Positions 840 through 25,000 of a stretch of DNA of 64,000 bases are shown one piece after another. Positions within the stretch are counted from its first letter, which is position 1. Each line of letters begins with the position of its first letter. The notes under the pieces were generated by a model. The model made no database searches, was not told where the DNA came from, and saw only the letters and a program-made list of their open reading frames with translations. The position numbers and the translations under genes were made by a program. Origin of the DNA: Thalia democratica. Lineage: Eukaryota. The stretch lies in contig OZ241834.1 in assembly GCA_965202585.1 (NCBI GenBank), positions 31,124,001-31,188,000 on the forward strand, in the 5' to 3' direction.

Positions 840-1023
840 CTAAAACAGACGCCATAATTTCTATTTTGTCTTCTCCATAACTGTTTGTTGCGGTAACATC
901 ATATTTCCCTCCGTCATCGACTGCAACCGACTTCAAATTGAGCTTCACCGTCGAGTTCTCCCTGACAAATTCAACGTTGTCGCTGCCGACGACGCTGGTA
1001 ATGAATTTGTCGTCTCCAGCGCT
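840..1023 (-). CDS. ttn: Exon 63 (I/A-junction-type Ig second half)
   Basis: VKLNLKSVAVDDGGKYDVTATNSYGEDKIEIMASVL then G|GTTAG. Confidence 0.87.
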
Positions 1024-4000
1024 CTGTGAATATGACAGGAAGGCTGTGATAATTGGTGACATTTGAGCTAACACCCGAGCGCGACCACTTGCTCGGCTTT
1101 CAGCGTTTGATTAATTGACTTGAAAGCCAAATTTGAACGCTGAACCTTTTGATTAACATTTAGCGCGCGCTTAGCTTCAGCTCGAGTTTTATTTGTGCAG
1201 CAGTTTTACTTATGCTCGAGTTGTATAACACCATCACTTCTTATGTAAATTATAGTACAGATTTATTTTTAAAGTTTTTGAATAACTTATAAAAATTAAA
1301 AGTCTAAACTAAAATAAAGAAAATTAAAAACATTCAAAACAACAAACTGTCTTTTTCCAACTGAACACGGGATCGGGAAACCCCAAATAAGCAACCACGA
1401 TCGAGTAGGGCTTGGAAGTCTTCATGACGACCTGGTCACTATCGTCAACCAATGTCAGAAGTTCCATCTTGGGCGGGCACGGAAAGCCGACCACGCATGT
1501 GGACTGGCAGGTCCTGTTCAACCGGGCCGTGTACCTACCCAGGTCGCCAGCACCAGCCTTGTTCACCACCAAGCTGTGCGTTTTTCCCTGTTGGCATGTA
1601 AAAATGATAAAATGAGAGGTACAAGTCGAAAGCAATCAAAAAATCAAAAAATGAAAATATTAAAAAGTGTGTTTTGCATTTAAATCAACTAAAAAGCGTA
1701 AATGTACAAACGGCTATGAAATTAACGTTATATATATAAAATAAAAACACAACGTTTTTTTTTTTTGGTTTTACCTAACTAATTGTTGTCCATTTGTACC
1801 TCACATTACACAAGTAGGTAAATCGATTACTTAAACATCTATTAATAGTGTTAAATTGAAAAGTATTAAATTTAACAGTATTAAAACATTCAATTAAGCC
1901 AGCAAACCTCAGCCGAGCACATGAGCTGGTGTTTCTCGCTGTTGCTTATTTCCTTGTCATTCAAAAGCCACTGGATTTTGTCGAGCTGGCTGATTTCGCA
2001 GGTCAGTTTGAAGGAACTTTTCAGCTTGACTTCGAGCTGGTCGGGAAGGACTTTGGTGAAGGTGGTCGATTTGCTCGAGGACCTTTTGCGCAAGACGTGC
2101 AGAGTTGTCCTGGATGAAACACGGTCGATTTTGCACTCGTATATGCCTGCATCGGATATCTAAAAAAAAAAAAGTTTATTAGGTTGATAGGGTGTTTTCA
2201 TATTATTTTTACAAAAAATTGAGTTTTTATGAAGTTTAAGAACTGTTAAAAAATTAGGCCACATGGGGTGTGAAAAAATTAATCAATTTTTATATAAGGC
2301 CTGTCTGTCAATTCACTACAGATATATATATATATATATATATATAAAATAAGGTTAATGTTTAAACTTAAACTCTTTCAACTGAGCCCACTTGAAGGGC
2401 TTTTAAATAATTTATTCAAATTATTATATATTATTATATATATATATATATATATAACTAATACATACTTTTTCTGTTTAGCTCAAAACATTTGTTTATG
2501 ATTTACTTTGTTTACTTTTAAAATGAGCTACTGAGTAAAAATTGTATTTTTGAATTATCTTTTTCTAAGCTGGGTTAAAACCTTGTGAGGTAAATACTTA
2601 TTTAATTTTATAAAAAGCCAATGTAACAAGTAAAAAGTAAAGTCTAAAAATAATATTTCTTTTGACCTCTGTATAAAATTTTAACCTGTATTTATTACGG
2701 CTATCATCAATAAAGTTGAGATGTTCTCGCCATTAATATGTGCTCTGTATGCAATTAAAAACAAAAAAAATTTGCCACAGAAATTTATATTTTTGTCACC
2801 AACTTTTACGTTTTTAATGATTAGCTGAAGCACGCCTTTATCTTCTTTTGTTGAAAATCTTTCGTTTTGTGCAACTTTCTTGTTGTCGTGAAACCACGTC
2901 ACAAACGACTTGTTCGGATACGTCACTTCACAGGTCATTATGACGTCATCGCCCTGATTCGACTTGACGGGCTTCAGCTCTTTGGTGAAGCTGACTTTTT
3001 CATCTGAATTTTTATAAATAATTTTTAAAAATCAGTTTAAAACACAAAACTCAAAACACAACCTGATCTCGAGTAAGATCTCGAGTATGTTCGCCGCAAC
3101 ATTTTCTTTTACTAATTGCCTTTATTACTGTTTGAACCTTACCATACTTACAATAAACACAAAATTTACAATTGACTTATTTTTAAAAAATGATTCTGTA
3201 AAAAAGAAGGAAAATAATCAATTCCAAAAATCTAGCGTTTAAAAAAAAAACTAATTCGTGTGCTCTTTCTTACTTAAACATCAGTGATTAAAAATAAAAC
3301 TGCAGTGCATATGCTTGAGTGAATAAGTGATGTAAAAAACACTTCTTGTTGCCTTCTTACACAAATCCCTAAGGAGCTTCAAAACAAATCCCCGATAATT
3401 TCGTCAGCTTACACTTTCTAGCGAGTGAGCGCGATTGAAACTACAAAGCGCGTCATTAAAAATTGTTATGTAATTAGCGTGGTTTTAATTAGTGTTTGTT
3501 TATTCAGAAAGAAATACTTTCGACAAAGCTTAAGGATAACGACGGTAAGTAGAACAAAACAGTATAGTTGATTACGAGATATGTGATAGAAAAAAAAATG
3601 TTCAAGTGATATAATTAGGGTAGTTTTCAAGTTTTTATTAGTAGGTAGAACATTCTTATTTATTTTCAATAAATTCCATTTTATAATACAGAAGAATAGT
3701 AAATAGTGTTATAAAACGTTTTCTATGGTTGATTTTAAAAAGCAAACAATTAAGAAGCATAATCTAGTTTAATTAACGATAACTTTACTCTGAAGTTTTA
3801 ATTTACGAACATTGCCAAATACTTTATTTATAAAACCTTATGCTTTTACACAAGTATACAATATAGATGGCTTTTTTGCATTTTAAAATAAGAATATATA
3901 AAATTTATGTTAAGCTTTATTTAAATATTTAAATAGTTATTAATAGTACGTTTAAGAAACATAATTTGAATTTTATTTTGTATAAACAAAAAGGAACAAC

Positions 4001-7000
4001 TTAATTATATTACATAAAGTCAGTAACACACTCACTTAAAAGTTAATAATTTAATTTTTTTTATAGCTTTTATAAAAACAGAAATAGAAGTATATGTGCT
4101 ACTTAATAGGTTATTTATAGTAACTTTTTATTCATGCAAAAGATTTTCACTTTAATTTACCGCACTTATTAAAATAATAAAGACAGAAATTATCAATTGT
4201 AAAGTTGTACCTTTATTGTACAAGGTATTTTAATAAAATGCATGAGTTGTAAATTATTATAGTTGCTATTGATAAGTTAAATCAAATAAATAAATTTTAA
4301 ATATATTAAATTAGTAAAAAAGGCATAATGTTTTAAGCGTAAATATTCATTTATTTTTTTTTAATTTATTTCTGTTAGCATTCTGTAATTTAACATCTGT
4401 TTAATACAAAAACAGTCTCAATATTTTTTAGTTAAGCTAAGTAGTTTAAAATTACTTTGGAAAGTTCAGTCGTTAACTTTTCAATCAGTCTTCAAAGCAT
4501 TTGAAAAATTAAAAAGGTTAATGTTAATTAGTTTTCAACAAACTTATGTTTCTTAAAACTTGGTAAATTTTCTTTCTTAAAGTTTTATTAAGTAAACTTA
4601 AAGTCTTTTGTAATTTTTATAAAAATATTTATATAATTAAATTAGTGATTTCTTTTAGTCCTAGTATTTAATATTTATAAGGTTGTAATCACAATTCCAA
4701 CTACGATAGAAAAAAAAGTATAATATATATCTTATATATATATATATATAATATAATCTTTAAAATTTGTTTTTGCATAAATTATTTTCGTAACAATCTA
4801 TACAAACCATATTCTGTGTTTACCAAAATCAACTTCTTGAATAGAACAAAACTACTACAAATAAATACTATAAAACCTATTTTTTTGTTAAGGTAGACAA
4901 CATAAGGTGTACAAATAAAAACTTTTTGAAAAAAGTTTTCGGAGTGTTTTTTTTGAATGGTATTTATTGTAACAGGATAAAAAACTCCTGATACTTTAAA
5001 ACTTTCTTGTAATCATAGTCTTACTTTTTGATAAAAGTGACTGTTTTTTATTACTTCATAGACTATTTGAAAGGTTTTTCACTTTTTTTTAATCAACTAA
5101 GCTTTACTTTTAGAAAAGTTTTATTTATTGATTTAAATTATCTTTTTAGAAATTAAAGAAATGAATATTACTAAATAAGAAAAAAAATAATGTCAAATAA
5201 AATGTGTCTCAAATACTTAAATATATTCAATTAACAAAATGAAAAACATTAGATTCCCTATGGCACTTTTTTAACTTAAAGGAATCTTAAATTCTAATAG
5301 AATTCATGTTTTGTGAGTTTAATAAAACTGTGATAACTTGATTAAGTTAATACTTTGTTGAACCTTTTTTAAACCAATTCAATTAAATAAAAATCGTAAA
5401 AATATAATTAAAAAAATTTTTCATACAGAGTTAGTGTATTACGAAAAGTATAGTTAAGCATATTAAAATTTTAACACAAAAGTTTATAAAACCGCATGCT
5501 AAAGGCTTAAATTAAAATTAAACTCGTAGACTTAATATTTGTTTCGATATTTAAAAGCATAAACAAGTTTAAAAAAATAGTTTAACATAAATAAAAAATA
5601 AGTATTTCATTATCTAAAAAGTACAACGTATCAAAAAAGTAAACGCCAACATATATTTTACTTAGATATAAAACTTCTATTTGCTGTAAATCACTTTGAC
5701 TTTAAACTTTTTTAACAAAGTATTTTAATACGAATATTTACCTAAAAGTGCTTTGTCAAAGATGTGATTAATTTTAATTTTAAATTTAGATATAATATAT
5801 TTAATTTTTCCTCTTTTTTTAAAGCTATATTCTGATATTTTTGAAAAACTTTAGTAAACTGTATCATAGTTAAATACAATTTAAACAATAAATTATCAAT
5901 TGAAAGATATAAAGTCTTCACCTAATAGTTTAGTGTGAACACACTATTATTATTTTTTCAATTCTGCACATAGCTTTAGAAAAGTTTTAAAATCACTAAC
6001 GTATAAAACAAAAGCATTGATTAAAATGTGGTAGTGTTTAAAAGTCGTTTTAAAAAACTTATTTGGTAGTCAAACAAACGGTTATTATTATAGAGTATTA
6101 TTACAATCGTTAAGTTTAGTAAATATTTATGTTTTAAACGCTTAATTTCTTTTATGGGATTTTTTAAATTATTAGCTTGTAATTACTTTTAAACTTTAGC
6201 ATAATATCGATAGTTATATTTAGATCAGAAGGTCTGATATATAAAATTAAAAAAATTTCATTGAAAATGTTGCTCGCAGGGTGTATAGAAAAAACTTTTC
6301 GTTGGCCGCAGTTATTTAAAGTACTTTTAATGATCAATAAAAAATACAATTTCTAAACAACAATGTGATTTTTAATGCAAAAAAAAGTCACTAGTAATTG
6401 ATAATTGTTTCAGTAATAGCCTACCTGTAAGTTTTTATAATATAAGTTATAAACGTTATAAAAGTATTTTAATAGCTGTAAGTTATATCACAGGCCTCAG
6501 TTCGCGAATCACTGATTTAATATCACAAAACTGTATATTAATCAACCTTAGTTTGTTAGTTTTAACCACATGTTATTTATATTTACAAATGAAAATATAA
6601 TAAAGAAAAAGAATTATATTGAACTCAACTACTGATTTTTTTTACATATTATAGTAAAACTACTTTGGCGTTTGAAAAAAAAAATAGCTAGCAAATTTGC
6701 TAATAACTTCTCACTTTAAGTTTTTTTAATTGACATCTAAACGTTCAAAAAGGTATCAACTGTTTTAATAACTTAGTCTTTACCTATTCCCTTAATTAAA
6801 TTTAGTAGAAGCAGTTAGTAAATATTAAAGTAGTTTAGTAAACAGCATATGAATAATCTGTTGTTTATTTTGGGACTTTTTGCTCCAAGCACGCCACGAT
6901 CAGTTTGATAAAAAGAAAGTTTATTTTTTGAAAATTTAGTTGAAAAACTGCTAGCATAACCTAGAGGTCAGTGGCCTTTATAACTTGATAGATATGTTTA

Positions 7001-10000
7001 AACCACAGGTCTTTTAATAAGAAATGTGTAAACTTTACGAGAAACGCTACTCGCGGGCACTGTATAAAAAGATCATTCGCAAGCACACTTATCTAAAATA
7101 ATTAAACTTTTGCGGTAATCAATAGAAATGAATAGTTTTAAATAAGTAAAGTTATAAATTATTTTATCACTATAGCACTAGTAATAAGTAGTTAAAAGTT
7201 CAAAAGCCTAAAAGGAAGTTTTTACCTTAAAAACCTTTTTAATATTTTAAATGTGTCTATTACGTGTGATAAAAACACACTTCGGACCAAATTTTGTCCG
7301 CGGGTCGTAGTATGCCAATCACCAGCATATTCACTAATTATTTTTTCTATTTAGAGACTTTTGTTTCGTTGTTTTAATGTTCGAAAATACTCGTTTGGCA
7401 AGAAGGCTTTGAATTTGTGTAGTGTAGTTTTCAAAAGTTAAAAGTTAGTATTTTAAATATAACTCTATGTTAAAGTTACATTATTTAATTACATTAAATA
7501 AAAGAATACTTTGACAAGTTCAAGTATTGTGTTTGTAATTTTTTTGAAATATGTGAGTCTATAAATAAGTTTTGAATAATCTTTAAAATTTTGTTGTATA
7601 TATCATAGTACACCTATTTTTAAAATATGCTATTACTTTCATAGAATGCAAACAGTTTAGAGAAACTTTAAGTATAAAAATTTTTAAGTAATTTTTTGGT
7701 CCAGCTACAGTTTAGTATTAAAAGTACAATGTTGACTTAGTTTAATTCAATAACAAATATGCTTGTGTACTTAAACTAAGCTCCAAACAAGTTTTACTTA
7801 AGTTAGTTTTATGTTATTTAGCAGAACATGCATTTAAACTTATCTTAAACCTTTACAACGATTAAGTTTTTATATAAATGTACATACTAATTAAACTTAC
7901 ATACGAATACGAATCTAGAAACAAAAACTATTAAAATTTTCTGTCGAGTTATTTAAACTTGTAAGTTAGCTGATATCATGAAGTAAATGTCAATTCTTAT
8001 ACCAATATATAAAATTTTGACAGTTTGTGATTTAATACTGAAAGTTTTTTTAGACTTTAAACCTATTTACATTCATTTTTTTAAAGATAAAAATTTGGTT
8101 AATAAAATAATTTATTTGGCATTAAAGTTTGGCATAGCTTTTATCGGAATTCATTCCGCCTACTTGCATACTGAATTACTTTTATAGGTATTATAAATAT
8201 TTTTTTACAATAAACAGAATAAAACAAAATTGATAATAAAAAAGTATGTGCTAAACGAGTGTAGTAAAAAATCACAAAAAAGTGCAACACTAGGTGGTGT
8301 AATTGAGAAATTATTACCGACCAATCACGCGCAAGAACGCAGAACACGTGACTTCTCCGAACTCGTTTGCCGCCGTCACTGAATATTCCCCGAAATCGCT
8401 GAAATAAATAAATTAGTTTCAATATATTCTAATAAAAAATGTTGAACTTAAAACATTTGACTGTTACCTGTGCTTGACTTTTTTGATTTCTAGGTAAGGT
8501 TTGGTTAGTGAATTTCCTATTTTGATTCCTACTTTTTCTGACAATTCTTTACCGTCCTTGTACCAAGTTATGTTTTTGGAGTTTGCGTGTTTCAACAAGC
8601 ATTTTAAACGAACCTGTGAAAAGGTTTAAAGTTTAAATTTGTTCGTGATTAGGTATTGATCAATGTTAATGTATTCAAAATACAAATTTCATAAACTAAT
8701 AAAAAACTAAAATCTTTTACAATTTTTAGTTGTTTCTCCTTTAAAGATCAATAATAGGTTTATACTAAAAAGTTTTAGTTACTTTATCGAAAATATAACA
8801 GATATAACAGACAAAAAAACTAAGTTTTTTTTTATTCTTACTTTATCTCCGTGTTTTACTTCCGCTGCAGACAGCTCTTTTGTGAATATCGGTGCTTCTA
8901 AAAGGTAGTCATCTACAAAAAGATTTTGTTAGAGTTAACAGTTAATGATTTATTTTCGACTTGCAGTGTGTTTTTTGCATAACAAGCAAGTGCTTATTTG
9001 TGGATCTAATTTTACGCTACTTATGAATGTTTGTGGATAAGATGATAGTAATTTTATTAAATGCCCTTTGCAATTTTAAATTGTGCTTTACATTATTAAA
9101 TGCTAAATAAACTGAAACAATTAAGAAAATCACATTAAAAACATTTTTCACACAAAGTACGTATTCATAAGGCATAACAGAACAGTTATACTTGTTTTAG
9201 TATCTAACCAAAACAAGATTTATCAAAAAACATCATTAATGAAGTAAATTTTCAACTTTTTTGCTAAAATAAAACAACAAACAATTTCGTGAGTACTTGC
9301 AACTACAGTTATAATGTTTATGTGCTAAAAATCTAAGTGCAAGTTTTTGTGCGGCTGCTACTTTAAAAACCAGTGAAATGTGCACTTTCAACTCGAAAAA
9401 CCAGTGTTTTTTTTCAAGTGAGTTCACCCTTTTTAGTAAAACCTTCAATTTCATCTTTCATTTGTTTTCTCCACGTATCGTCATCGCTACTGTTTGAAAT
9501 TTTCCGTTTGTTGGTCGGAACTTCCTTTTCCTCTGTCTGCACTTCCCTATCAACTAGATTCTGCGAGGGTTTATCAACGAACTGGTCGTGCTCACTGCTC
9601 ACCACCAACGTCGCTCTGCACTGAGTGCTCCCCTTCTCGTTTGAAGCCAGAACCTTGTATACTCCTGAGCTCGAACTCATGCTGCTGCTTATTATCAGGC
9701 ATCCCGCTTCGTTTCCATCGCTGATCACCTCGATCTTGTCCTTCATCGGCTCGACGGGCTCGTTGTTCCTGAACCACTGAACGCTCGTTTCGCAGCTGCT
9801 CGGCTTGAGGGTGTAGACGAAGTGCGCGGGCTGGCCCTCCGCAACGGAGCAATCCGAGATTGTCTTCAGAAATTCCGGAGGCTCGGTTTGAAAGCTTTTG
9901 TTATCATCCGCAGCTTTTTTGATGGTTTTTATTTCTTCCCTGATCACGGTCTTGATCTTGTCCGACCAGTTCTCGGTGAGCGCCATTTTGTACAGCGGCT

Positions 10001-13000
10001 CGTCCTGGCTCGCCGCCGAGTCCGACTCGACTTCGTCGTGTTTCCTCTTCGCGTCGCCCTCGTGCGGTGATTTAATTAGCTGCTGAATTGACTTGGAAAA
10101 TAAATTGACCGCATGGTGGCCTCCCTTCATCACCATGGACGGGTGGCTCATCAGCACGTCTCTGGTGGCAGAGGAGCTTTGACGATCTTCTTCCGTTTCT
10201 TCTTCTTCCAGATCGTCTTCGATGATATCTATGTTTGAATAAGGATTTAAATTTTCTCGTAAACGTTTTAGTAGAACGTGCGCGTTTTTTGTACTAATTT
10301 CACTGAAAAAAAAAGTTCTGCTAAGATGAAAATGTTGACTGATCTGAAAGCTGAGTCTGTCTAAACAAAACGTGTAACTAAACTAAAGCGTCTAAGTTTT
10401 AATGAATTTTTAACAACTGCGGTGTGTTGAACTTCAAATGCACTTGAAGACTGGTTCGTATGAAATCTAAAAAAATAATACCAGTTTCAAAACTCTATTA
10501 TTTTTGTCTTTTTAAACTAACACTCAACTCTAAAACATCAAGCAAAGCAACATTATGCACATTCGTTAGCGTTAGACCATTCCAAAAATCCAGAGTATTT
10601 AAGAAATAAAGATGACTTTGTTTATTTTAATAAGTTTAAAAAAATTTAAACATTATTAGACATAATTAAAATTTTACAAAATATTTTTTGAAGTGAAAAT
10701 AAGTTTTTCCTTTAATAGATAAAAAAGTCAGAAAAAAACTCTCTATTTGTTATTGTTTGAGGAGAATCTTTGTTTTAAGAATTTAACATGCTTGCAAAAT
10801 GTTTAACAAACTCTCAAATAGCTTTTTGACTAGTTTTGATATGTGAATAAATGTCATATCATGCCGTGAAATTATAGTCTTATAGTTAAGTACTGATAAA
10901 ATTTGTTAGTATTACTTTGGGTTTCCAGTAACACACTAAACTATATATCGTAGTAGGCTTTTTTGATACTTAGTTTTAGAATTTATTTGTCCTGTTTTAC
11001 ATCAGTGCCATAAGAAACACCTAATCTTATACAAAAACTGCTACGAGCGGTTTAGTTGTTATATTTTGAAAGAAACAATCGGCAATAACCTAGTGGTAGT
11101 TTAAAATAAAGTCTTACAATAAATAAAAGTGTTTTACACAAGTTTAGAAAAAATATATACGTATAACAACAAAATAAAACTAGTTTATGTATAACTTTAT
11201 TCTATCAATACAAGCATTCGAGTGATAAATGTTTAATTTTTAAAACATCTATTTTCAGCATGCAAAAGTATGTTTTAATGCTAATGAAGCTCACATGTTA
11301 ATATATTTTGATAAAACAATGGTGTATGTGAATAAAAACTAAATTTAATTAAAACTCTACAGAAACATTTACATGTAAAATATGCTGATAAGATTTTTTT
11401 AACTATTAACATTCTAACTTATATGTGTCAAAAATTTAAGTAAGTTAGTAAAACAAAAATAATAAAATGTAAAATAAATAAATCACTAAACAAAAATGGC
11501 TTAATTTCGATATGAAACTTAATAAATATAAAGAAAAAAGCATTTGTGATACACAAAAACGTTTGACAAAAATCATGCATAGTTATTTTTGTAACTAAAA
11601 CTTTTATTCCAGCTGGTAAAACTGATATCTAAAAAAAATCTACACTATAGTTTTTTTTTTTCAAAACATTTTCTATTACTATTTAAATACTTTTACTTGT
11701 AAAATATTTTTGGTATTCTTAGCTTATGGTTTTTTACCAAAAAAATTCGAGCACAGTGAAAACTTTTATCTTAAGACAAAATTTGTAAAACTTCAAAAAG
11801 GAAAGTGCAATATTTACTTTAAACTTATTTTTAGGTTTTTACTTACCTTTTTTAAAAGCTTTTTGATTTTTTACTGTAACGTTAAAAGTTTGCTTAAAAA
11901 GTTGTTTTTTATCACTTTCAGCAACAAAAACGTATTTGCCAGTGTGTTCAGTTTGAAAGTTATTTATTGTCAGCGAATATAAGTCTTCATTCATTTTATT
12001 GGACAGCTGAATACTATCACTCATATTTTTTACTTCAACGCCGTCCTTAGTCCAGGAGCACTTTTCTGGCTTTTTATGCTTTAAGCACGGACATAGGACT
12101 AGCTTTTCTCCCAAAGTCCCAAAACAATTTTCGGTCAGCTTATCGTTCACCAACTTGTCTTTTTTACCCTTGGAAATTTTTGGTGACAAACTAACAACAC
12201 CATTAAATTCGTCACTGGACGAAACTACCATATCAGCTATCAAGGTAGTGCAGCTGGAAGTTGAAATGTCACTAGATGAGCTGTTGAGGAGAATTGACAA
12301 GTGCTTGCTCGACTCATCATCTGTAAAAACGTCGCAAGTCCCGTCCAAAAACGAAATGTCTTTGGTGGCAATGGTGTCGCAGTCTGAAAACACGCTCGTG
12401 TCGTTGCTGCCTGCTGGAGATGTGTCATATTGATGTGTTGAGGCGGAAATACAATCATCAGCAGGAGATGGGCCACCTAGATGCGTTGAGGTAGACGCGC
12501 AGTCATCAATGACTATCTTAGGAGCGTCTGTTCGAGATGGGATCTTACCTGAACCACTTGCTTCAAGGTCATCGTCACTCAAAGTTTTGTTGTGATGCGT
12601 TGAGGCGGAATTGCAGTCAACAACAACGATCTTTGGAGCGTCTGTTTGATTCGTCATTTTGTCCGTGCAACCACTCGTCTTAGGAGGATTTATTTCAATC
12701 GGTATATTGTCCATCGAACCACTTGTTTTAGGCTCTGCGATGCTCAAAGTTTCGAACACGGCGTCGTTGTCCTGCAGATCGTTCCTGCTGCTGCACCTTG
12801 TTGGCAGTTTCGTGCTGGTGCTTCGAGGGGAGAAGTTTTCGGGTATGGATCCGTTGAATGAGTTGAGGAAGGAGCAATCTTCCGTTCCTACCGTTTCGCA
12901 GTCGGAAAACATGCTGATCGTAGTTGATTCATCCAAGTTATCGCTACTCAGTTTCTTCAGTCTGTCTTCCAAAACTTTTTCACTGTTGCATTTATCAGAA

Positions 13001-16000
13001 GAAAGATCGTTCAAATCTAGCTTGGGTAGTCTTTGCTTGTCATTCGGAGCTAGGTTGTTTCTAGTACGCGTTTTCAGATGCCTGCTCTTGTGGCTGTTGC
13101 TTCTGATTTTGGGCTTTAAAGGATACGAACGCCTGTTTTTCGGTTTAAGCTCTTCCACACTTTCCTCTCTTATTGATTCATCCTTGCTTGGTATCGGCAA
13201 GCTTTTGCTCAAGTCGTCTTTTTTAACTCCTAGTGAAAATTTGGTGGCAATGTTTCCTTCTTCGTTTGAGACGGTGACTTTGTATTCGCCGCTGTAGTAT
13301 TTTTGAAACTTTTTAAAAGTCATTATTGCGTCATAAGAGAACATTTCCCTGTTCAGCTCGATTCTTCTCATTATTTCTGAACCGAACTGTAGAAAAAAAT
13401 TGAAATTTTGAGTCAAATTTACAACAAAGACTTATTGCGTTTATTTTAACACTAAGTAAAAAAATCATTTTTTGTAGTCTTTAACGACTTTAATGAACTA
13501 GCCAAGTATATTAAATAATTTCTTAATTTTAAACCATATATTACTCTTTGTTATTTCTTATATATAATTAATAATTACATTTTAACTCATTCCACAAAAA
13601 CTACGACAGGCATAAATATATTCCACTTTATGTATTTGAATTTATTTTAAATGTTTTTAAACATATTTATTGTATGATAATTAACAACTGCTAGCTAGTA
13701 ACCTTTTCATCGTTAAAATACCACTCGACATCCGGTTTTGGACTGGCAACAAACGTGCACTTAATTCTGAACCTTTCATCTACTGGAACATCGTATGAGC
13801 GTTTTGGCTTGATGAGAAACGCCGGTTTGACGTTGTTCGCTTTTGATCTGGCTTTAGCAACTGGCCTGAAAAGGTTTTGTTATTCAAATTCTTATTTTTT
13901 TATAAAATTATTATCTTGTAAACTTATTTATAAAACAATGTTTCACTGAACTAATATTTGTTATTAACAACATTCTAAATTACAATAAATAGTCGAAAAC
14001 TGAAATAAAATTTATAGAAACATTAAGCTTAGCTTAAGTTTACAAACTATATTTAAACTATATGTTTTGTGATTTAGTCAAAATGTTTCAAGTACAAACT
14101 TGGCTACGTCAAGTGTTTCCTTGAGGGTAGGCTCAATGTAAAAATGATAGATCTTTGCTCCGTACTTTAAATCGAGATTGTGTAAGTTGATACTTGATGT
14201 TTTATCTGTCATTATTAATAACGTGTTGAAGTAACAAATATAATTGTAAGTATATTGGAATTATATAAATATTTTAATTTAAAAAATAACTTGAGGTAGT
14301 TTAATTTGAATTATTGTAATGCTTATATTCAGAATTATGAGTCATACTAGCTTTATCTAAAAATCACATCAAGAAAACATATAAAAATGTTTAGAGATTT
14401 AAAATAAAGAGTAAACTAAGAAGAAATGTTGTAAAAATCTCACCTTAAAAATGGTAGCAGAAGAAATTGAAACAGAAAGGAGGAAGAATTAATTGTGCAT
14501 TTGATTGTCGTTGAAAGGGGTAAAAAAATCAAACTTCAATAAAACTTGCGTCAAAAACAAAAGAAACGAATAAAGCTGTCTTTAAATAAATCAAACTATG
14601 CTGAAATCTAACATCTTTCAACAGTCTACTATAGTAACTGCTGTACGAATCAAACAAGCTAATTTTTCTAAAATATATTTTTTCTGATGAAATGCAAAGA
14701 AAATATAAAACAGTTAGGAAAACAAAACAAATAAAGTAACACATTTTTTTTTAAGTCGCATAATAAGCAGAAAAATGAGAAATATAAAAAGTAGTATGTA
14801 TTGTGTACGGACTTAGAAGGTTTTATTTAAAGATTTTATTAAGTTTTAAATAATAATAGTTGTCTATATATATAACATTTAGAAAATCACTACTTATACA
14901 TGTATTCTTACCGTCTTCATTATCTTTGATTTCTGATTTTCTTGAACTTTCTTCTTCTGTTGAAAATTATTTTGTTAAATTGTCTTAAGTACAATAATAA
15001 TAAATACTTTTGCAGAATTTAACACAAAAACAGTATGACTCCATTGAAATATATACAGGAAACACTGCAAAATAAAACTAGAATGAAATGATAACGAATG
15101 TTTATATTATAACTAAACGCGTTTTTTTTTCTCATGCTAACTTTAGAATTATTCTGTTTATGCACGTTTTAATGAAACTGCTGAAACACACAAATACTTG
15201 AAAAAAACAAGCAAAATTAAAGTCTCTTAACAAAAAAAGAAGAAAAACTTAAATTAAACTTAAACACAATAGATGAAATTTCTAGCGAACTTCTCCTTAT
15301 GGATAATGCTTATTGAAAAAAACAGTGTTCTATCCATAAAATATTAAATAAATGTTTTAACTGTTTAGAAGTAATACTATGAACATAGCTCACTTCATTT
15401 TACTTTAAATAATCTTGAAAAAAACAAAGCAGCAAACTATGAGTAGATTAATAACTTTTTTGTAAAACATTAACACGAAATGTATGTAAAATAACATGAA
15501 AGAAAACTTTTAATTTTTAAACCACGTTTAAGCGAACCAAAATAGGACCTTCGTTATTTTAATATAATACCTGTATGACTGTGTCAACATGCAGTCTGAA
15601 CTGATTCTAAACTGTTGATCAGAAGATTTGTGTTCGCGACTTTACACGCTTTTCGCGCGCGAACATCCTGTAATGTTCACAACACCCTTTTTGCATTATG
15701 AATCTTTGTTGAAAAACACATAAAATCGAAATAAGTTTATGTAAAACAAGATGAAACAAGTAGCTATTAAAAATGCCCTTCAGCAAACCAAAACATGAAT
15801 TTGAGTAACTTTTGTATTAGGTATACATGTAGGTATTATGTACACACACAAATTAATGTTCTTTATTTTGTACTGGTTTGATTTTTTTCCACGCATGAAC
15901 ACAAAGTTTAAGCAATGAATCTGCACTCCTCCCCACAAATGGACCAAAAACACACGTTAATGATATTTTCACGCATGAGTTCACACCCTCCCGTCACCTC

Positions 16001-19000
16001 GGTCGAAGAACACGTGGGTGCTCGAGCTGGCCACCTCGCCCCCGAACTCGTCCCGCCCCACGCACGTGTACACCCCGCTCATCTCTACCCCACCTCCGCC
16101 TTCCCTCGCCTCCAGCCGCGCCCGCGTGTCCCCGTCCTCCGTCTTCCACGACGACTTCCTGAACAGCTTCGGGTTCAGCGGCTCGCCGTCCCTCCGCCAC
16201 TCCACGGAGGAGGATCCCGACATGACGCACTCCAGCCGCACGTCCTTCTCGTTCAGGGTGGGCGATTCCACGGGCCGGAGGACGGACGGGGGTCGGTCCG
16301 TTGAGGAGGACCGCTGCTGCCAGTACGACTTTCTCTTTTCTGTGGGAGAAATGATGAATGAAGTCAAGGCATTTTTGAAGCAAAATAAGTTGTTCGCTTT
16401 AATATAGGCAGTATTAATGTTTGTGTACAAAAACAAAAAATATTAGTTTTTTGGTTTTAATGTATACCAGCTTGAGTTTCTTGAAATAACTGTAATTTTA
16501 AATACGGTCAGCTTAATTTTCTTTATAAAGTTTTTTTTTCTATACATATTTAAAATAAAGTAACATTGAAAAATTATAAGGAAAAATAAATAAAATATCG
16601 ACAAAATAATTTTGAACAAACAAGCCATCTTTTATGTAACGTTTATAAAAAATATATCAAAAAAGCTCTTACTAACCGACTCTGAGCGTCGCTTCGCAGC
16701 TCGCCGACCCGTGAGTGTTGCAGACCCAGCACTTGACGCTGCATCCGTCATGCTCCTTCCTGCTCGGCCGCTCTATGATCAGCGTGTGTACCCCGCACAC
16801 GTCATCCACCAGGATCGAGTACCCCACCTGAGCCGGCCTCACCTCCGTCTCGTTGACCGTCCACCTGACCAGCCCCAGCCCTTCCACCTGGCACGTGAAC
16901 TCGGCCGCTTCGGACTCGAAGCACGATTGCGCCGTGAGGGACTTTTTGAAGCACGGCGCGAAGCTTTCCGGCGCCCTGGTCGGCTTGGGGGTGACGGGGT
17001 AATCCCCGATGACGGAGAACTCGACGGTGGACAGACTGTCTTGGGATCGCATGTTCGTACTGACGCCCTGCCACAGCTCCTCCTCGCAATACTCCACCTT
17101 GCTGGGAGTGGACACGTAGCTCTGACCGCATTCGCTCTCGTCCGTTACTTCGTCGATTTCAATGAAGCTCTGCTGGGACTCTTCAACGATAATCTCCTCG
17201 TCGCTTTGCTGCGTCACAATCGGTTCTACTTCCTTTTCGATTGCTTTTTCATAATTATCTTTGCTTTCCTCTGTCTTTATATTAGTTTTTGCAATTTCAA
17301 CTTTCGGTTTGTTTTTTGTCTTTTTTAATTTCCTAGACTTTTTCAGGGTGCTAGATTGGTCTTGTTCAACTATATAGCTACTCTCTATATGTGTTTTATT
17401 TGAACTTTTATTTTCTAATGAAATTTTTTCATTACGTGTACTAGTTTTCAATTTAGCTGCACTTTCTGAAGATTTATTGGATTGTACAACATCTTTTTTG
17501 ATTTTGATTTTTTCTGTGTTTTTTAAGTTTTTTAAAGAAGTTTTGTTTTTGTTTGACTTTAATTTTTTTGACGACTTTTTGGTTGCTTTAAGCTTTTTCT
17601 TCTCAGTTTTGTTTTCTTTACCAGTTTTAGTTACTTCAGATGCCTTGGCTATTTTATCACTCTTCTTAGTATGTTGCTCATTTTGAGAAAGTGAAGTTTC
17701 ATTATCTAAAATAGAGGTTTTACTTTCAACAAACTGCTGTTTGGCCTCTTTAAAAGCCGAAAGCGCGTCGACCGATCTTTTTTCTTCGACTTTTTCCCTG
17801 TCTTCCTTCTGCAATCCCATCGACGACCTCTTCAAGGACTCCATCTCGCTCTCTGCTTTCGCGGTGTCGGTCAACTTGCTCTCACTCGCCGCGCCTTCCA
17901 ACCTCTCGTGCTTGCTCCTTTCCTTCCTGAAGTTGTGCGTCCTGTAAACTTCTTCCTTCTCCACCGACGTCAGGGACGAAGATTCTTGCAAGTCTTTGTC
18001 GACTTCACTGAAAAAAGACTCCCTGTTCATTTCAACTGTTGAAGATTGCGTTTCTCCTTCGAACCTGGACGCGCTCGAGTCGCGCGACCTGAACCGCTGC
18101 TCGCTGGCGTCCCTCGACCGCAGCCCGCTCCTGATCTGCGCCAGGCTCCTCCTGTTGGCCTCCTCCGTGTCGTCGACGACCTTCTTGTCTTTTTGCACCG
18201 TCCTCAGGTTCTTCAGCGCCACCAAGGACTCGTTCCTCCGCTTCGCCTTCGAGTACCTCGCCAGCTCCACCTGCTCCTCAACCTGCTGGTTCGACCTGCC
18301 GGAAGTTCGGCCCCTCTGCCCTCCTGAAGGTTTCGGAGGCAGCGTCTGGTCGGCTTCGGGCCTCGAGTCGCTTTCCTTCCTGCGCAGTTTCGGCTTCTTG
18401 GTTGTTTTCGACTGCCTGACCAGCTTTTTACCGGATTTGTTCGCGCTTTTTGAAATTTTCGAGTCGGAAGATTTTGTTTTGTTTTTAAGTGAGGACTTTT
18501 TGCTTGAGCTTGATTTTTTTATTTTGCTTGTCAAACTGCTTTCAGCCGTGCTTTTGCTGACTGATTGGTCCTTTGTTTTTATCAGTTTTTCAGTTTTTTT
18601 CTTAAGATCAACAGCAGTTGTTTCATTTTTATTTGATGTCTCTTCAATAGAAGTAGCTATTTTATCAATCAAACTTTCTTTATCACTTTTTGAAGCTTGT
18701 TCGTAGTTGATGTTATTTTTATTAAAGCTTTGTTTCTTACCTTCAGATATCTTGTATTGCTCTGATTGAATATTTTTCTTGTTTGCAACTAGATTCAAAC
18801 TAACCTCGTCATTTTTTATACTGCTATGTACCTTGCTATTAACCAATTTATTTATATTGTTGCTTTGTTTACTTTGATTATTCTGTTTATTTGTTTGAGT
18901 ATTTAAACTAGCATTTTTTGAAGTAAGATTAGAGGGAGCTTTTGAGTCTGAAGCATTTTCGTCTTTTATTTTATTTTCAAATAACTGGTTATTTGCTTCT

Positions 19001-22000
19001 TTAAAACTTTTAACTATAGACTCTTGCTTTTTCAAGCTGTCTTTAAGCGCTTCAGATATACCATCTTTTATATTTTCTGATTTTGTTTCACAAAGTTTGA
19101 TTAAAGCTTCTAATTCGTCTAGTTTGTTTTTTGACTCCTTATTTGTATTATCAAATTTATCTTTAAAAGCACTGTCATCATTTTCAAGTTTTAAACTTTC
19201 ACAATTGTCTTCAATATGAGAGTCAAAAGTGCTTAAACTTTCTATGTTAGACCGATTTGTATTCTTTTGTTCAATGGTTTTTTCTGACTCATACAGTTTA
19301 TTATCTATGTTTTTATTAACATTAAAATCATGTGTGTTATTGTTGTATTCAAAAGTGTTTTCTGAGTTATTTAGTTTGTTATTTGAATTTATACCTATAT
19401 TAAACATGTTTGGATTATTGTGTTGTTCAAAAGCATTTTCTGACTCATTTAATTTAATTTTGGACATTTTATCAACATTAGAATTGTTTGTACTTTTGTG
19501 CTTTTCAAAAACACTTTCTGACTCGTTATTTTCTAAATTTTCATTTACATAAAAGTTATTTGTTTTATCAAATTGTTCAAAACTTTTATTTGGTTCATTA
19601 AGTTTTCGTTCTAATTTTGTATCTGTATTTATATAATATGTATTTTCTCTACTTTCTGTACTAGTATTTGAAATGTTATAACCGTCATCTATGTTGTTAC
19701 CACTGGGTGTTTGCCCCGGCGACTCAGTACCTTGCCTTGAGAAATCATCCGAATCATTCTCAAAAGTAAGATCTTCTAAAGATGCCGGGGCCCCGAAGTT
19801 TCCCAACAGACGGTTGTTTGGGCGCTTTCTACCTGAGAACACGTCACGTGACTCCTCTTTTATACCTGATTGGCTCTGCTGCTTCCTCTGCTGCTCCTCA
19901 ACGAAGCTCTTCATCTGCCTCCGGTCGCTCACAGTCGCCAGGTAGTCCTGCTTCATCTGCCGCATCTTGCTGCTCACGCTCTCTCCCTTCGCTTCTTCCC
20001 TCTCCTCCTTCCTGCCGATCACCGGCTGCCTCACCTCCTCGGCCACCTCCTTCAGCTCCTCCTCCCCGACAAACACCATCTCGAAACCCCTCCTGCGCGG
20101 GTTCCACCTCCTCCGCCATCCGTCTTTGAGCGAGCTCGACACGCTGTCCGACCTGACGCAGTCGCACGTCTCCGGCCTCCTCCTCGCGTCGAGGTCGTAC
20201 GCGAGCTTGGAAGGAGGCCGCTGCATGGTGGAGGAGGAGCAGATCGAAAACGTGTCGTCGTCCGACATAAGGTTCTTGATCTCGTCCACCGACTGCTGCG
20301 AGTCGGCTATGGAGCTCATTTCGTCGTACCTCCGCTCGTACGTTTTTGTCGTGGCAGCCGGGGGCACGACTCCGCCAAAGTACTCCATGTTGATCCTGCG
20401 CAGCTCCTGCTTCTTCTTCTCCTTGCTCTTGGCTCGAGACTCTTTCTTGTCGTCCGACTCGGCAAAGACTATCTCGAAGGCGCGGGTTCTCGGGTTCCAG
20501 CGGCGCTTCTGGGTGAAGACGTCCGACCCGCTCGGCGACTGCGTCCTTATGCAGTCGGTGGAGGCCGGCCGCTTGTAAGGGTTCACCAGTTTTTCCAGGT
20601 CGACGTCGTTCAGCTCGGTGATCCTGGCGCGGTCCTTGTCGTCTTCTATCATCCAGCCCTCCTCCACCTTGAACTCGGTCCTCGGCATGGGCTCGTTTAT
20701 CAAGTCGCCCCTGTTCTCGTGCTGGTCCTGCTTGACGGTCGACACGAACTTTTCCCCCGTCGCCGGGTTGTACACCTCGTAGCTGATCCTCTCCTGCTTC
20801 GTCTGCAGCTTCTTGCCGTCGCCCTGCTGCTTGATCCGCGTCGTGGTCGTCGTCTCCGTCGTCTCCACCAGCACGATCTTGTTCTCCTCGTCGCCCAGCG
20901 CTTTCTCCTTGATGCCGGTGTGGTCCTCGGGCGGCAGCGGCATCGTGCTCCTGTCGTGCTTCAGGTGGTCCAGGGCGCTGTTCTTCAGGTTGTCCTTCAG
21001 CGACTTCCGCCTCTTCCTGGTGACGACGTCCTCGTACACGCTCTCCTCGGTCACGTACACCGACGGCTTGAACTCCTCGACCTGCCGCTCGTCCAGCGAC
21101 TCGGTCGGCGTCGTCTGCGTCTCGATCTCGTGCCTCCCCACCACGCTGCTCTCCTCCTCCTGCAGGACTTCCTCGTACAAGGACTCGTCCTCCGACTGCG
21201 CCGACGACCGCTCGAACATCAGCTCCTTCTTCTCGGCCGACTTGTACTTGACGGGCTGCGGCTTGGGGAAGGTAAAGACCATGGGAGGCGGGGTGCGACG
21301 CTCCCTCAGCATCAGCTTGAACTCGGACCTGGAAATTTCGGGAGGAGGTTTCGGCTGTTCCTCTTCCTCGGGCTTTCCTTCGTCGGATGAAAACTCAAGC
21401 GCCTTCGTCAGCTGCTTCTCCTGGTTCAGGTTCTCGTTGACCGTTTCGACTTCTTTTTCTTCTTCAATTTCTTCTGGTTCGGCTGTCACGGGTCTTCCCA
21501 CTTGCGCGCTGAACAGCGAAGGAGTTATGGCTCCGTGGCCTCCTCTTATCTTCATGCTCATCACGCTCCTGCTTCTCTCCTCCTCTTCCTCTCGCACGTC
21601 GAAGGGAATCTCGTAGTCGGCCTGAGCGTTCAGGGAGTACTGAGAAAGGACGCTCTGGCTGTTCTGCTGCCTCTCGTTGCTCCTGAACATGATGTTGACG
21701 GGAGAAAGGGCTCTCGTCTCCCGCATCGTCGCCGTCACCTCGCTGCGGTGCGATTCTCCTCGGTAGGGACTCGGAGACCTGCCTGCGTGGACGTCGAAGA
21801 GGGGCGGCGTCTGAAAGAGAACTCTTCTTTGCTGCTCCCTCTGGTGTTGTGACGCGTCTTCGTCTCCCATTATGACGTCACGCGCCTCCTGGATCGACTT
21901 GTGCAGCTCGTTGTAAAGAGCCTCCTCGTCGAACGCGCGCTTCTCGAGAACCACCGTGGAAACCGGTGGGGAGGGAGACCTGCTCGACACCTTCAGGCGG

Positions 22001-25000
22001 ATCTCCTGCCTGCTTTCCACCTCGCTCCTACCCCCCTTCCTGAACATCCTTAAACCTGGCGAAGGGGTTCTGCCCACCATGACGTTGAAACCGGGAGTTA
22101 TTGATCTCTGGACGGCCGGCACCTGCATTGTGTAGGTGGTGATGTCCCTGTCCAGGAAGTGGTCGTAGCAGTGGCACATGGTGGAGCCCTGGCCCGTGTA
22201 GGTCATGTAAAAGTGACCTGCCATCGAGGACAGGCTGCCTAATCTGTCCACGTTCGCCGATTTCATGGTGACGTGGTGGACTTTGTTGAAGTTTTTCAAC
22301 GTGTTGGTGGTCACTAACTTGCTACTTAAACTACTAGTAACTACTTACGTGAATGAAGACACAGTTTCCCGAATTCGTTTTATTTTTCATTGTGACGTCA
22401 TACACACGATAACAGAGCAGCGATTGATACAGCCATGGGGGAAGCAGCAAAGAAACATGTAAAAAAAAAAGTTATAGTAAGTAGAAGGAAAAAAGGCTTT
22501 TTATATAAGGCATGCTAAATAAAAACTATGAAAAATTTTGAAAAAAAGATTTGTGTTAAACTTTTCTAAGAAAAAATGACTGTATCAAATCGCGCTACAC
22601 AAACAAAAAAAAGTTAAATAAATACAGATATTAATTTGCTGCCAAAACAACTCTTAAAACACAAATCAGATTCAAAAACAAAAGTCTTAAAACAAAAATT
22701 TTAAGCAGCTGCAGCGGCGGGCGAGTAGTTGACAAGGAATTTACCTTCCGTCTCCCTTCGCCTCGTGTCCTCCCTGGCAACGACGTTGGTGGCGCTGACG
22801 ACGCGCCCCAGCTTGTTGCTGGCCACGCACTCGTACAACCCGACGTCCTGCTCCTGCAACTGGGACACCACCAGGCACGAGGTGTACTCGTGGTCCCTCA
22901 CCTCGTACGAAAACCTTCTCCGCATGTCGATTTTCCCGCCATTTTGGTACGGGCGGATCGGCTGCCCGTCCTTGTACCACGCGACCTGCGGGTCGGGGCA
23001 CGCGGAGAACTTGACCCTCAACCGGGTTTCCCCGTTTTCGGGGTCGACCCGCATCTTTTCGACGACGGTGGGCGAGAACTCGACTTCCAGCACTGGTACG
23101 GGGACTTTTATCTCGTAGGGGGTGCGCGACTCGAACCTTTCGATTTGCGTCACAAAGCCCTGCTTCTGCTTGTCTAGCTTCAGTTTTTCTGAAATGTTAA
23201 AAACAAAGTGAGTTTTTGTTGAAGAGTTTGCAGATTTCAAGGCATTCCAAATGATTTCAAACTCACAGCAAGCTTTGAGTTTAGCATGACGAAACCCACT
23301 GTTTATGAAAATCCAATCTGATGACTTTTATTTTTGATTACATGACAATATATTAAAAAATCAACCTACTAAACAAACAACAAATTGCGCCAGAAAAGTA
23401 TAATGCAAGCAAAAAAACATACTTGGAAAAAATCTCAACCAAAACAAACACTTCATGATGATAACTGCAGATTATTTTACCTGTAACTTCCAAGTCAGTG
23501 CTGCTGATTGCTTCACCGCAGCTGTTCAAAGCGTGGCACCTCACTTCACCTGAATCTTGCACCCTGGAAGACTCTATAACCAACCAGCATTGGCCTGTGC
23601 TGCTCAACCGCCCGCACTGTGATAAGTTAGAACAAAGTTAGAACTGCTTCTTACAATGTTAACTTTACGTTCAAATTGTTTTCGTTCTTTAAGTTTTAGG
23701 ATGTCTACCACACAGACCTTGTTTCTGTTAGTTATGTCCTCGCCATTCAGAAACCACCTGACACCGAGCCGGTCTCCTTCTATGACGCAGCTCATTCTAA
23801 CTATGCTGCCCTCTATGACGTGCAAAGGCTGCAACGGGCTCAAAACTTTTGGCGGCAAAACTGGAATGATTAGGTTGTTTATAAATTTCTTCTTAACATG
23901 TGGAATGATATAAAATGATGGTGATGTGATTTTTTTTCAAAAAGCAAAAAAAAAATTGAGTTCTTTTTTTTATCTTAGCTTTCCACTTAATTTTCAAATA
24001 ATTTAGCAAATATATGGCTCCCTCCAATAAAAGGTATCAAAAAGCTAACTTTGTTGGCAAAACTAAAATGTTTAAACTTTGAAAACATTTATATAAAGGT
24101 TAAATGAGCAGAGGATAGAAGCTGAACAAGCATATGAAGACGCAACAGTTTCGTTACTCAGATCAGAATCAAGTTTAAATTAAGAGTTCTTTTTTTTAAC
24201 TGTGAACTACGATCATGACTTGCTTTCTTTATTTTATAAAACAAAATGAAAACATACAGATGAAACTGATTCCTGTTTTTTTTTCTAAAATAATAAATTC
24301 AAAACAAAAAAAAAGGAACAAAATTCTAACTGAAACGAACACTCTGAATGATTTCAATGAAGTCAACCAAAACACAAACAAGCCTCATTTTACGAGCTTA
24401 CTTTCGATGTTGAGTTTGGCCTGCGAAAGCGTTTTGTTTACCGAGTTTGAAACAATGCACTCGTAAGTGCCTTCGTCTTCCTCCTTGACCTCGGCAATTT
24501 CAAGCTGCAGCTTGCAACCGATGGCGGTGATTTTGTAGTTTTCACCGTTCTTTATTTCAACATCGTTTCGTCTCCACACAACTGTCGGATCTGATTGAAA
24601 GCAACGTGAAGGGATGTTAGAAATACTTTAGCATTTGATTATACAACATAGCTATTTAAACTGTCAATAAAAACAGTTTTAATTGGTGATTACGTAAAAT
24701 ACGTTTATCTAGTAACAAAAATATTTTAGCAAAACTTTGTATGTCATAAAAAAATGCATTAATAAAAGATATTATTTTCTACTAAGTGTTTGTTTAGTTT
24801 GAAAGCATTTATTTCAAAAGCATCTTCGACTTAAAACTCAGTCTTACTCGTTCCTGCAATTTCACAAGTAAATCTAGAGGTCTGTCCTTTCTTGGCGTGG
24901 AAGTCTTGAAGAGGCTGGATGATTTGGACAGCTTCCTCTTCTTCCCTCTCCAACATTTGCTCACCCTCAACATGTTTGACTTCTTCTATTTGTTCTTCAT

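Follow-up and report, generated by a model that had tools for sequence, protein, structure and literature searches.

We analysed a 64,000-nucleotide stretch of the Thalia democratica genome (assembly GCA_965202585.1, contig OZ241834.1, positions 31,124,001 to 31,188,000; hereafter the window). Between positions 23188 and 840 its minus strand probably encodes central and distal parts of the I-band of a pelagic tunicate titin/connectin, in which unique modules form a differently built spring and the PEVK (Pro-Glu-Val-Lys) segment has been lost or replaced. Coordinates follow the numbering of the window, with negative positions lying to its left, and domains and PEVK-type composition were mapped over 164 kb, that is, the window plus 100 kb to its left. 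The titin I-band determines passive stiffness in striated muscle, and its vertebrate layout (proximal Igs, then N2B/N2A, PEVK and distal Igs) commonly serves as the chordate pattern. Every long open frame in 840-23188 runs on the minus strand. The two limits are exact outer exon bases, 23188 being the first base of the exon that carries approximately the 22nd Ig of the protein and 840 the last base of the last Ig exon. An earlier interpretation made from the letters of this DNA (the sequence-only reading) had placed both ends correctly, but its exon account lacked a 45-nt exon at 14956-14912.

The region splices into one open frame of 3,366 residues, and extending the model into the Fn3 exon beyond the left edge of the window gives 3,430 stop-free residues. 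Splice sites were taken from three sources: the best-scoring joins with hidden Markov models (HMMs), codon reading at the boundaries and, for two introns, RNA contigs. For the latter, contigs of four runs were compared over 15990-21980, the stretch to which the RNA evidence is restricted. These include the DNA run X3, a marine metatranscriptome (X1) and a run (X4) that carries the organism label of X3, has no recorded type and behaves like RNA. On the minus strand the model joins 23188-22745, 22313-16677, 16339-15998, 14956-14912, 13851-13703, 13386-11847, 10228-9443, 8897-8842, 8613-8468, 8398-8322, 3003-2804, 2159-1908, 1587-1348 and 1023-840, and then -192..-385. Its product consists of ten Igs followed by Fn3, with non-domain gaps of 32, 1794, 16, 25, 345, 122 and 51 residues that sum to 2,385. 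The sequence-only reading had described unique sequence from three large exons alternating with single Igs, a layout that stands, but its figure of about 2,500 residues was slightly too high. The last four Igs abut, being spaced by 2, 8 and 4 residues, and the Fn3 begins 2 residues after the last of them. Two short Igs plus one more had been proposed ahead of the junction between I-band and A-band; they are indeed few, but the Ig at 8897-8322, the first of the four, had gone uncounted. The features are listed below, with a slash marking the splice site.

22745..23188, minus strand: linker of ~32 residues and Ig exon (Pfam I-set, E 1.2e-13); last Ig of the proximal array, ~22nd of the protein.
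16962..22313, minus strand: unique part of the giant exon, ~1,790 residues; open for 1,890 codons; putative acceptor 22313 or 22280.
16677..16961, minus strand: Ig at the 3' end of the giant exon (Pfam I-set, E 1.9e-7); phase-1 donor TCG/GTTAGT.
15998..16339, minus strand: Ig exon, 114 codons, between two phase-1 introns (own Ig HMM, E 4e-12).
14912..14956, minus strand: 45-nt micro-exon encoding (x)EESSRKSEIKDNED; phase-1 introns on both sides, acceptor CAG/ and donor ACG/GTAAGA.
13703..13851, minus strand: first half of an Ig (own Ig HMM, E 4.7e-7); acceptor 13851 (phase 1) or the stronger 13865 (phase 2).
11847..13386, minus strand: second half of that Ig, a unique S/D/T-rich part of 345-355 residues and a complete Ig (Pfam I-set, E 3e-9).
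9443..10228, minus strand: acidic unique part of ~122 residues, Ig (Pfam I-set, E 2.3e-10) and E/K/D-rich tail of ~50 residues.
8322..8897, minus strand: Ig in three exons (8897-8842, 8613-8468, 8398-8322), phases 1/0/2/1; E 2.5e-18 in the product.
3004..8321, minus strand: largest intron, 5.3 kb, 20-25% guanine plus cytosine (GC); no coding candidate in GC, frame and exon-candidate scans.
840..3003, minus strand: last three Igs in four exons (3003-2804, 2159-1908, 1587-1348, 1023-840), placed by the best HMM-scoring joins; Pfam I-set.

Six of the pieces tested gave Pfam I-set matches above the cut-off, including the Ig that ends the giant exon, and three others matched I-set below it, namely exon 16339-15998 and two half-domains. 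For exon 15998..16339 the Ig_2, Ig_3 and I-set matches were weak and all below the Pfam cut-offs; its ends are set by RNA contigs, the 5' end by a joint and the 3' end by loose ends in X4 and X1. The last three Igs reached E-values of 1e-11, 1.6e-7 and 5e-13 in the spliced product. The final one ends in ..MASVL at the phase-1 donor TTAG/GTTAGC, and a solved-structure search with it returned generic Ig matches only; the sequence-only reading had proposed a possible likeness to the last vertebrate I-band Ig. The first exon to the left of the window (-192..-385) is a Pfam fn3 domain (E 3.5e-8, 34 bits against a cut-off of 25), in agreement with the prediction that the next exon would encode Fn3.

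Every module is flanked by phase-1 introns, as in vertebrate titin, so that skipping a module would keep the frame. Exon 22745..23188 has such introns on both sides, with the acceptor ..TTTCAG/ and the donor GAAG/GTAAAT, and the G/GTAAG donor of exon 11847..13386 is readable in all three sequences available for it (the window and two orthologues). The donors at 14912 and 11847 are also phase 1, but the strongest acceptors downstream of them, 13865 (TTTTCAG/) and 10302 (TTTTTTTTCAG/), are phase 2. Candidates for bridging exons ahead of these two acceptors were considered and none was credible, so the model takes the weaker phase-1 acceptors 13851 and 10228, with an effect of at most ~25 residues. 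The mismatch means that either these weaker acceptors are in use or small exons are missing. The exon that begins at 10228, or at the stronger 10302, has its donor at 9443 or 9428.

The identity of the gene is read from its domain string and from the matches of single pieces. Ig and Fn3 HMMs built from the locus itself were used for mapping alongside Pfam, and inside the window they find Ig only and no Fn3. Around 22 Igs, assigned to the Z-disc and proximal regions, lie between 50.4 and 22.8 kb, upstream of the giant exon, and ~31 Igs precede the first Fn3 in the protein. Both the N-terminal Z-disc Igs with proximal tandem Igs and the A-band Ig/Fn3 super-repeats (of 7-domain D-zone and 11-domain C-zone type) that characterise chordate titin/connectin are present. 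Among solved structures, the first Ig matches titin chains best, with an alignment to Z1 in 2a38 and 1ya5 (Z1Z2); a search with another Z-disc piece, 37369-37647, gave no meaningful match. The Z-disc Igs thus appear related to titin Z1Z2, which does not imply domain-by-domain orthology. To the left of the window, the A-band part repeats a D-zone-like unit of the form I-F-I-F-F-F four times; in this unit a non-domain gap follows the first Fn3. Beyond these units come 11-domain I-F-F-I-F-F-F-I-F-F-F super-repeats in many copies. The best named matches of a 1,200-residue D-zone piece just left of the window are amphioxus titin-like proteins; the best 150 matches are all of 7,602 residues or fewer (amphioxus titin-like, twitchin, unc-89 and unnamed proteins). 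In the I-band/A-band transition zone, before the first D-zone-like unit, six consecutive Fn3 domains are found at -7099 to -10356 on the minus strand, the last of which shows its second half followed by an acidic unique stretch (..EDPTTVENIDEEPQKVPSETESSSESSEK..).

No PEVK segment is present in this I-band. In a scan of the three minus-strand frames of the 164 kb, a 26-residue stretch had to reach 62% P+E+V+K and contain three or more prolines; only three isolated stretches passed, all of them domain or linker pieces. The single one in the window (23055-23132, minus strand; ESRTPYEIKVPVPVLEVEFSPTVVEK) spans the linker and first Ig strand of exon 22745..23188. The unique segments contain 23-46% P+E+V+K and are rich instead in E, K, S, N and D, whereas vertebrate PEVK reaches ~70% or more; the 26-28-residue PPAK repeats and E-rich motifs of PEVK are lacking. 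The array of small, symmetric exons with phase-1 introns is likewise missing, with one 45-nt exon in its place and the unique sequence concentrated in three large exons. A long distal Ig array is also absent. Where the vertebrate distal tandem-Ig segment has about 22 Igs, four abutting Igs lead to the first Fn3, and the 100 kb beyond contains Ig/Fn3 super-repeats only, with no further Ig array. The sequence-only reading was therefore right to exclude both PEVK and a long distal Ig array. Ig arrays or PEVK to the left of the window, or PEVK exons hidden in introns, would have spoken against it, and these searches yielded a single tiny exon that is not of PEVK type.

That exon, 14912-14956, is rich in E, S, K and D and is known through RNA contigs alone: the loose ends at 15998 in X4 and X1 map uniquely to 14927-14956, and scans of GC content and open reading frames (ORFs) are blind to it. 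Its existence, together with the strong phase-2 acceptors 13865 and 10302 that do not match the phase-1 donors upstream, raises the question of whether the I-band is larger in some isoforms through further exons in introns or in other tissues. We regard this as very improbable. When the criteria were relaxed enough to recover the 45-nt exon, no other charged micro-exon candidate appeared in any intron, and no credible bridging exon or PEVK-like stretch in any frame came to light. Intron space amounts to ~12 kb in total, and the biggest intron holds one short dispersed repeat only. Hidden PEVK exons were considered separately and rejected: the intron GC islands are closed in all frames or are Ig pieces, and the composition scan was negative.

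The largest unique module is the giant exon, whose ~1,790 non-Ig residues match no Pfam family above the cut-off. Its first ~880 residues are GC-rich and contain conserved blocks; thereafter AT-rich, N/K/S-rich blocks (24-32% GC) alternate with blocks of 53-61% GC. Within the compared stretch, X4 and X1 cover the exon, AT-rich blocks included, and show no internal joint. At its 3' end both contain the joint 16677->16339 with GT..AG intron ends, and in the intron bin 16390-16589 these two runs have no depth, against 145 for the DNA run X3. Because of this joint and the zero intron depth, the exon is in line rather than terminal: in the RNA contigs it is spliced to the next Ig exon, in the manner of vertebrate N2B. 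The other marks of an N2B-type element, a large unique sequence flanked by Igs and placed after the proximal Igs, are found as well. A terminal exon of the novex-3 type would hold the stop codon and end a short isoform, but X4 and X1 use the donor at 16677 without intron depth.

An in-frame TAG lies directly behind this donor (16672-16676, minus strand; GTC G/GT TAG), and retention of the intron would consequently end the protein right after the giant-exon Ig. An intron-retaining, novex-3-like short form is possible, although none was seen in the contigs of 15990-21980. This stop codon, and the phase-1 introns on both sides of the exon that would let it be skipped in frame, form the basis of an alternative in which the giant exon serves either as a cassette that can be left out or as an alternative 3' end. 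The main isoform would then retain ~590 unique residues and have a truly miniature I-band. Such an arrangement seems improbable, as the only contigs that cross the 3' end, from two samples independent of each other, continue into the following Ig exon and show zero intron depth; a skipping joint could not show in this comparison because the stretch is too short.

In the spliced model, approximately 22 Z-disc and proximal Igs are followed by the in-line 5.6-kb giant exon with its ~1,790 unique residues and terminal Ig. Next come single Igs split by the 15-residue micro-exon and by unique segments of ~345, 122 and 51 residues, and finally the four abutting Igs, leading directly into the first A-band Fn3. 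The non-domain residues would supply entropic extensibility, as PEVK and the N2B unique sequence (N2Bus) do in vertebrates. This spring function is inferred from two properties of the unique segments: they lie in series between the Z-disc and thick-filament anchors, and they look disordered. In a charge-hydropathy analysis every unique segment plots as disordered, whereas the neighbouring Igs plot as folded. AlphaFold2 (AF2) modelling of giant-exon residues 1-880 gave a mean predicted local distance difference test (pLDDT) score of 37.8, with 759 of the 880 residues below 50. On these grounds the ~2,400 non-domain residues are probably largely disordered. The earlier suggestion of a spring made of E/K/S/N-rich disordered segments accordingly fits the composition, the predicted disorder and the in-line position, but it leaves out a second role, in binding, to which the motifs described below point.

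At 0.38 nm per residue, the 2,385 non-domain residues have a contour length of ~0.9 µm. The longest skeletal PEVK of human titin has ~2,200 residues, and cardiac N2Bus plus PEVK ~750. The extensible chain in Thalia would therefore be comparable to the former and far above the latter. The term 'miniature', used for this I-band by the sequence-only reading, fits the number of Igs (~31 ahead of the first Fn3) and the 22-kb gene span, but it does not fit the extensible length.

The unique sequence had also been called low-complexity. That holds in part, but large parts of it are under purifying selection and carry repeated linear motifs. Relatives were found on marine metagenome contigs, two of them labelled Tara Oceans, with RNA-type matches from marine metatranscriptomes; these sources mark the animal as pelagic. 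Two such contigs encode orthologues of the 530-residue exon 11847..13386, P0001 at 75% identity and P0002 at 52%. The ratio of nonsynonymous to synonymous substitution rates (dN/dS) in its 345-355-residue unique part is 0.25 and 0.11, against 0.24 and 0.23 in the Ig of the same exon. Residues 20-831 of the giant exon align to a Tara metagenome orthologue with 37% identity (E 5e-113); between these two, synonymous sites are saturated and the proportion of nonsynonymous differences (pN) is 0.33-0.43. Conserved elements of the giant exon include three to four copies of a TPxFNVxVGRTPSP-like motif, KSIQEARDVIM, a block of ~120 residues around VLVETTETTT..YEV..P.TGEK and two copies of RP.S.DC.R..S......RRWNPRxRxFE[IM]VF. 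Exon 11847..13386 contains two copies of FSDC[ED]T..T.D.SFL and a repeated PKIV.DDC.S.STH.

These conserved, repeated motifs are the reason to propose docking for the unique modules, and they would probably serve as docking sites as well, like those of vertebrate N2B and N2A. Carried further, they could mean that the unique segments act chiefly as scaffolds for docking or signalling, resembling N2A, N2B or a novex-3 hub, and that elasticity comes from the ~31 Igs or from other proteins. The unique segment is constrained as strongly as its flanking Igs in terms of dN/dS, the short repeated motifs are strongly kept across three divergent relatives, and the only moderately confident elements in the AF2 model (pLDDT ~70-76) are the RRWNP..FE.VF hairpins and nearby short helices, which coincide with conserved motifs. 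We nevertheless consider a mainly scaffolding role unlikely. All segments stand in series in the chain and so must bear load, and docking and elasticity are compatible; vertebrate N2Bus does both. Furthermore, the AT-rich N/K/S blocks (~900 residues), which have no orthologue among the proteins found, look like pure spacer.

Several points weigh against a differently built spring that has taken the place of PEVK. A purely entropic spring would not call for selection as strong as that on the Igs. The AF2 model was built on a two-sequence alignment, so its low pLDDT is weak evidence for disorder. The RNA evidence consists of assembled contigs from one organism-labelled run and one metatranscriptome sample, over 15990-21980 only. 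Two acceptors are ambiguous, those of the exons ending at 13703 and 9443. Lastly, a few more small exons like 14912-14956 may exist, given that this one escaped every sequence-based scan until RNA contigs were used.

Comparison with known systems places the Thalia I-band closest to individual vertebrate elements rather than to their full set. The giant exon resembles the vertebrate N2B element. In both, one large exon encodes unique and probably disordered sequence, closes with an Ig and is joined in line to more Igs. The giant exon also follows the proximal Igs (here ~13 beyond roughly nine Z-disc Igs) and lies in series in the spring region. Its unique segment of ~1,790 residues is, however, about three times longer than the 572-residue unique sequence of N2B and is a mosaic of GC- and AT-rich parts. 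With the vertebrate novex-3 exon it shares multi-kilobase size, a place after the proximal Igs and a stop right behind the donor; it differs in being spliced onward in the RNA contigs, with no terminal isoform seen. With vertebrate PEVK the unique modules share phase-1 intron bounds and the presumed role of an unfolded, extensible chain between Igs, and the 15-residue charged exon recalls the style of PEVK exons.

Amphioxus connectin is described as having an Ig-PEVK region, in which it would differ from the PEVK-free protein of Thalia. According to PMC12198301, non-vertebrate chordate titins are reported to combine an elastic region in the I-band with an A-band region resembling that of vertebrates, and the A-band super-repeats found here agree with such an A-band, as in ascidian (Ciona) and amphioxus connectin. 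Among the insect members of the titin family, Sallimus/kettin and projectin likewise have elastic parts made of Igs and unique extensible sequence. They differ in possessing PEVK segments, such segments being reported for kettin and projectin in PMC3835035, and in dividing I-band and A-band functions between two genes. A literature search for descriptions of a tunicate titin I-band found none.

Since PEVK-type segments occur in insect kettin and projectin and a PEVK-like stretch occurs in an amphioxus titin-like protein, the simpler and more likely explanation is that the missing PEVK reflects loss or replacement in this lineage rather than the ancestral chordate state. The suggestion that the locus informs the ancestral chordate spring is weakened to the same degree, and the tunicate locus alone does not give that ancestral state. 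A further-reaching proposal is that, with PEVK and the distal Ig array both absent, the lineage-specific conserved disordered modules constitute an independently evolved spring-and-hub in several pelagic tunicates. We put this forward tentatively, as a possibility that we lean against rather than for. Word-based, HMM and feature searches of the unique sequence returned pelagic-tunicate relatives only.

If the spring is indeed differently built, it would be an evolutionarily replaceable part of titin, exchanged while the Z-disc part, the proximal Igs and the A-band ruler were kept. The unique modules would also provide new natural sequences with which to ask whether entropic springs need composition only or specific motifs as well.

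Further observations concern the reach of the conserved sequence. For the later half of the giant exon, where the AT-rich N/K/S blocks lie, no orthologue was present among the proteins found. The whole giant exon had no match among proteins of 1,040-3,300 residues, and an ESM Atlas feature search with a conserved block gave no usable match. On the Tara scaffold L014 (3007 bp), the open frame stops near the equivalent of residue 880, ~40 nt before the contig end, and a possible donor (AAAAAG/GTCTGC) lies nearby; the giant exon may be shorter or split there. In amphioxus titin-like XP_066263902.1, P/A/V/E/K-rich, PEVK-like inserts occur at residues ~5990-6380, between M-band Igs and after the presumed kinase gap; judged by sequence, PEVK-like composition is not confined to I-bands.

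Within the giant exon itself, the AT-rich blocks remain free of stops over hundreds of codons and also occur in RNA contigs; they may be recent in-exon expansions. Self-BLAST found no internal repeats, and Tandem Repeats Finder reported just one, a 78-bp (26-residue) tandem repeat of 2.8 copies with 71% match at 19311-19524, in the N-rich part. An Rfam search over 1-24000 returned no family. The repeat in the largest intron measures ~200 bp and lies near 6250-6500. Of 39 other genomic matches to this intron, 37 fall on it, with 69-85% identity, and it is probably a short non-autonomous element.

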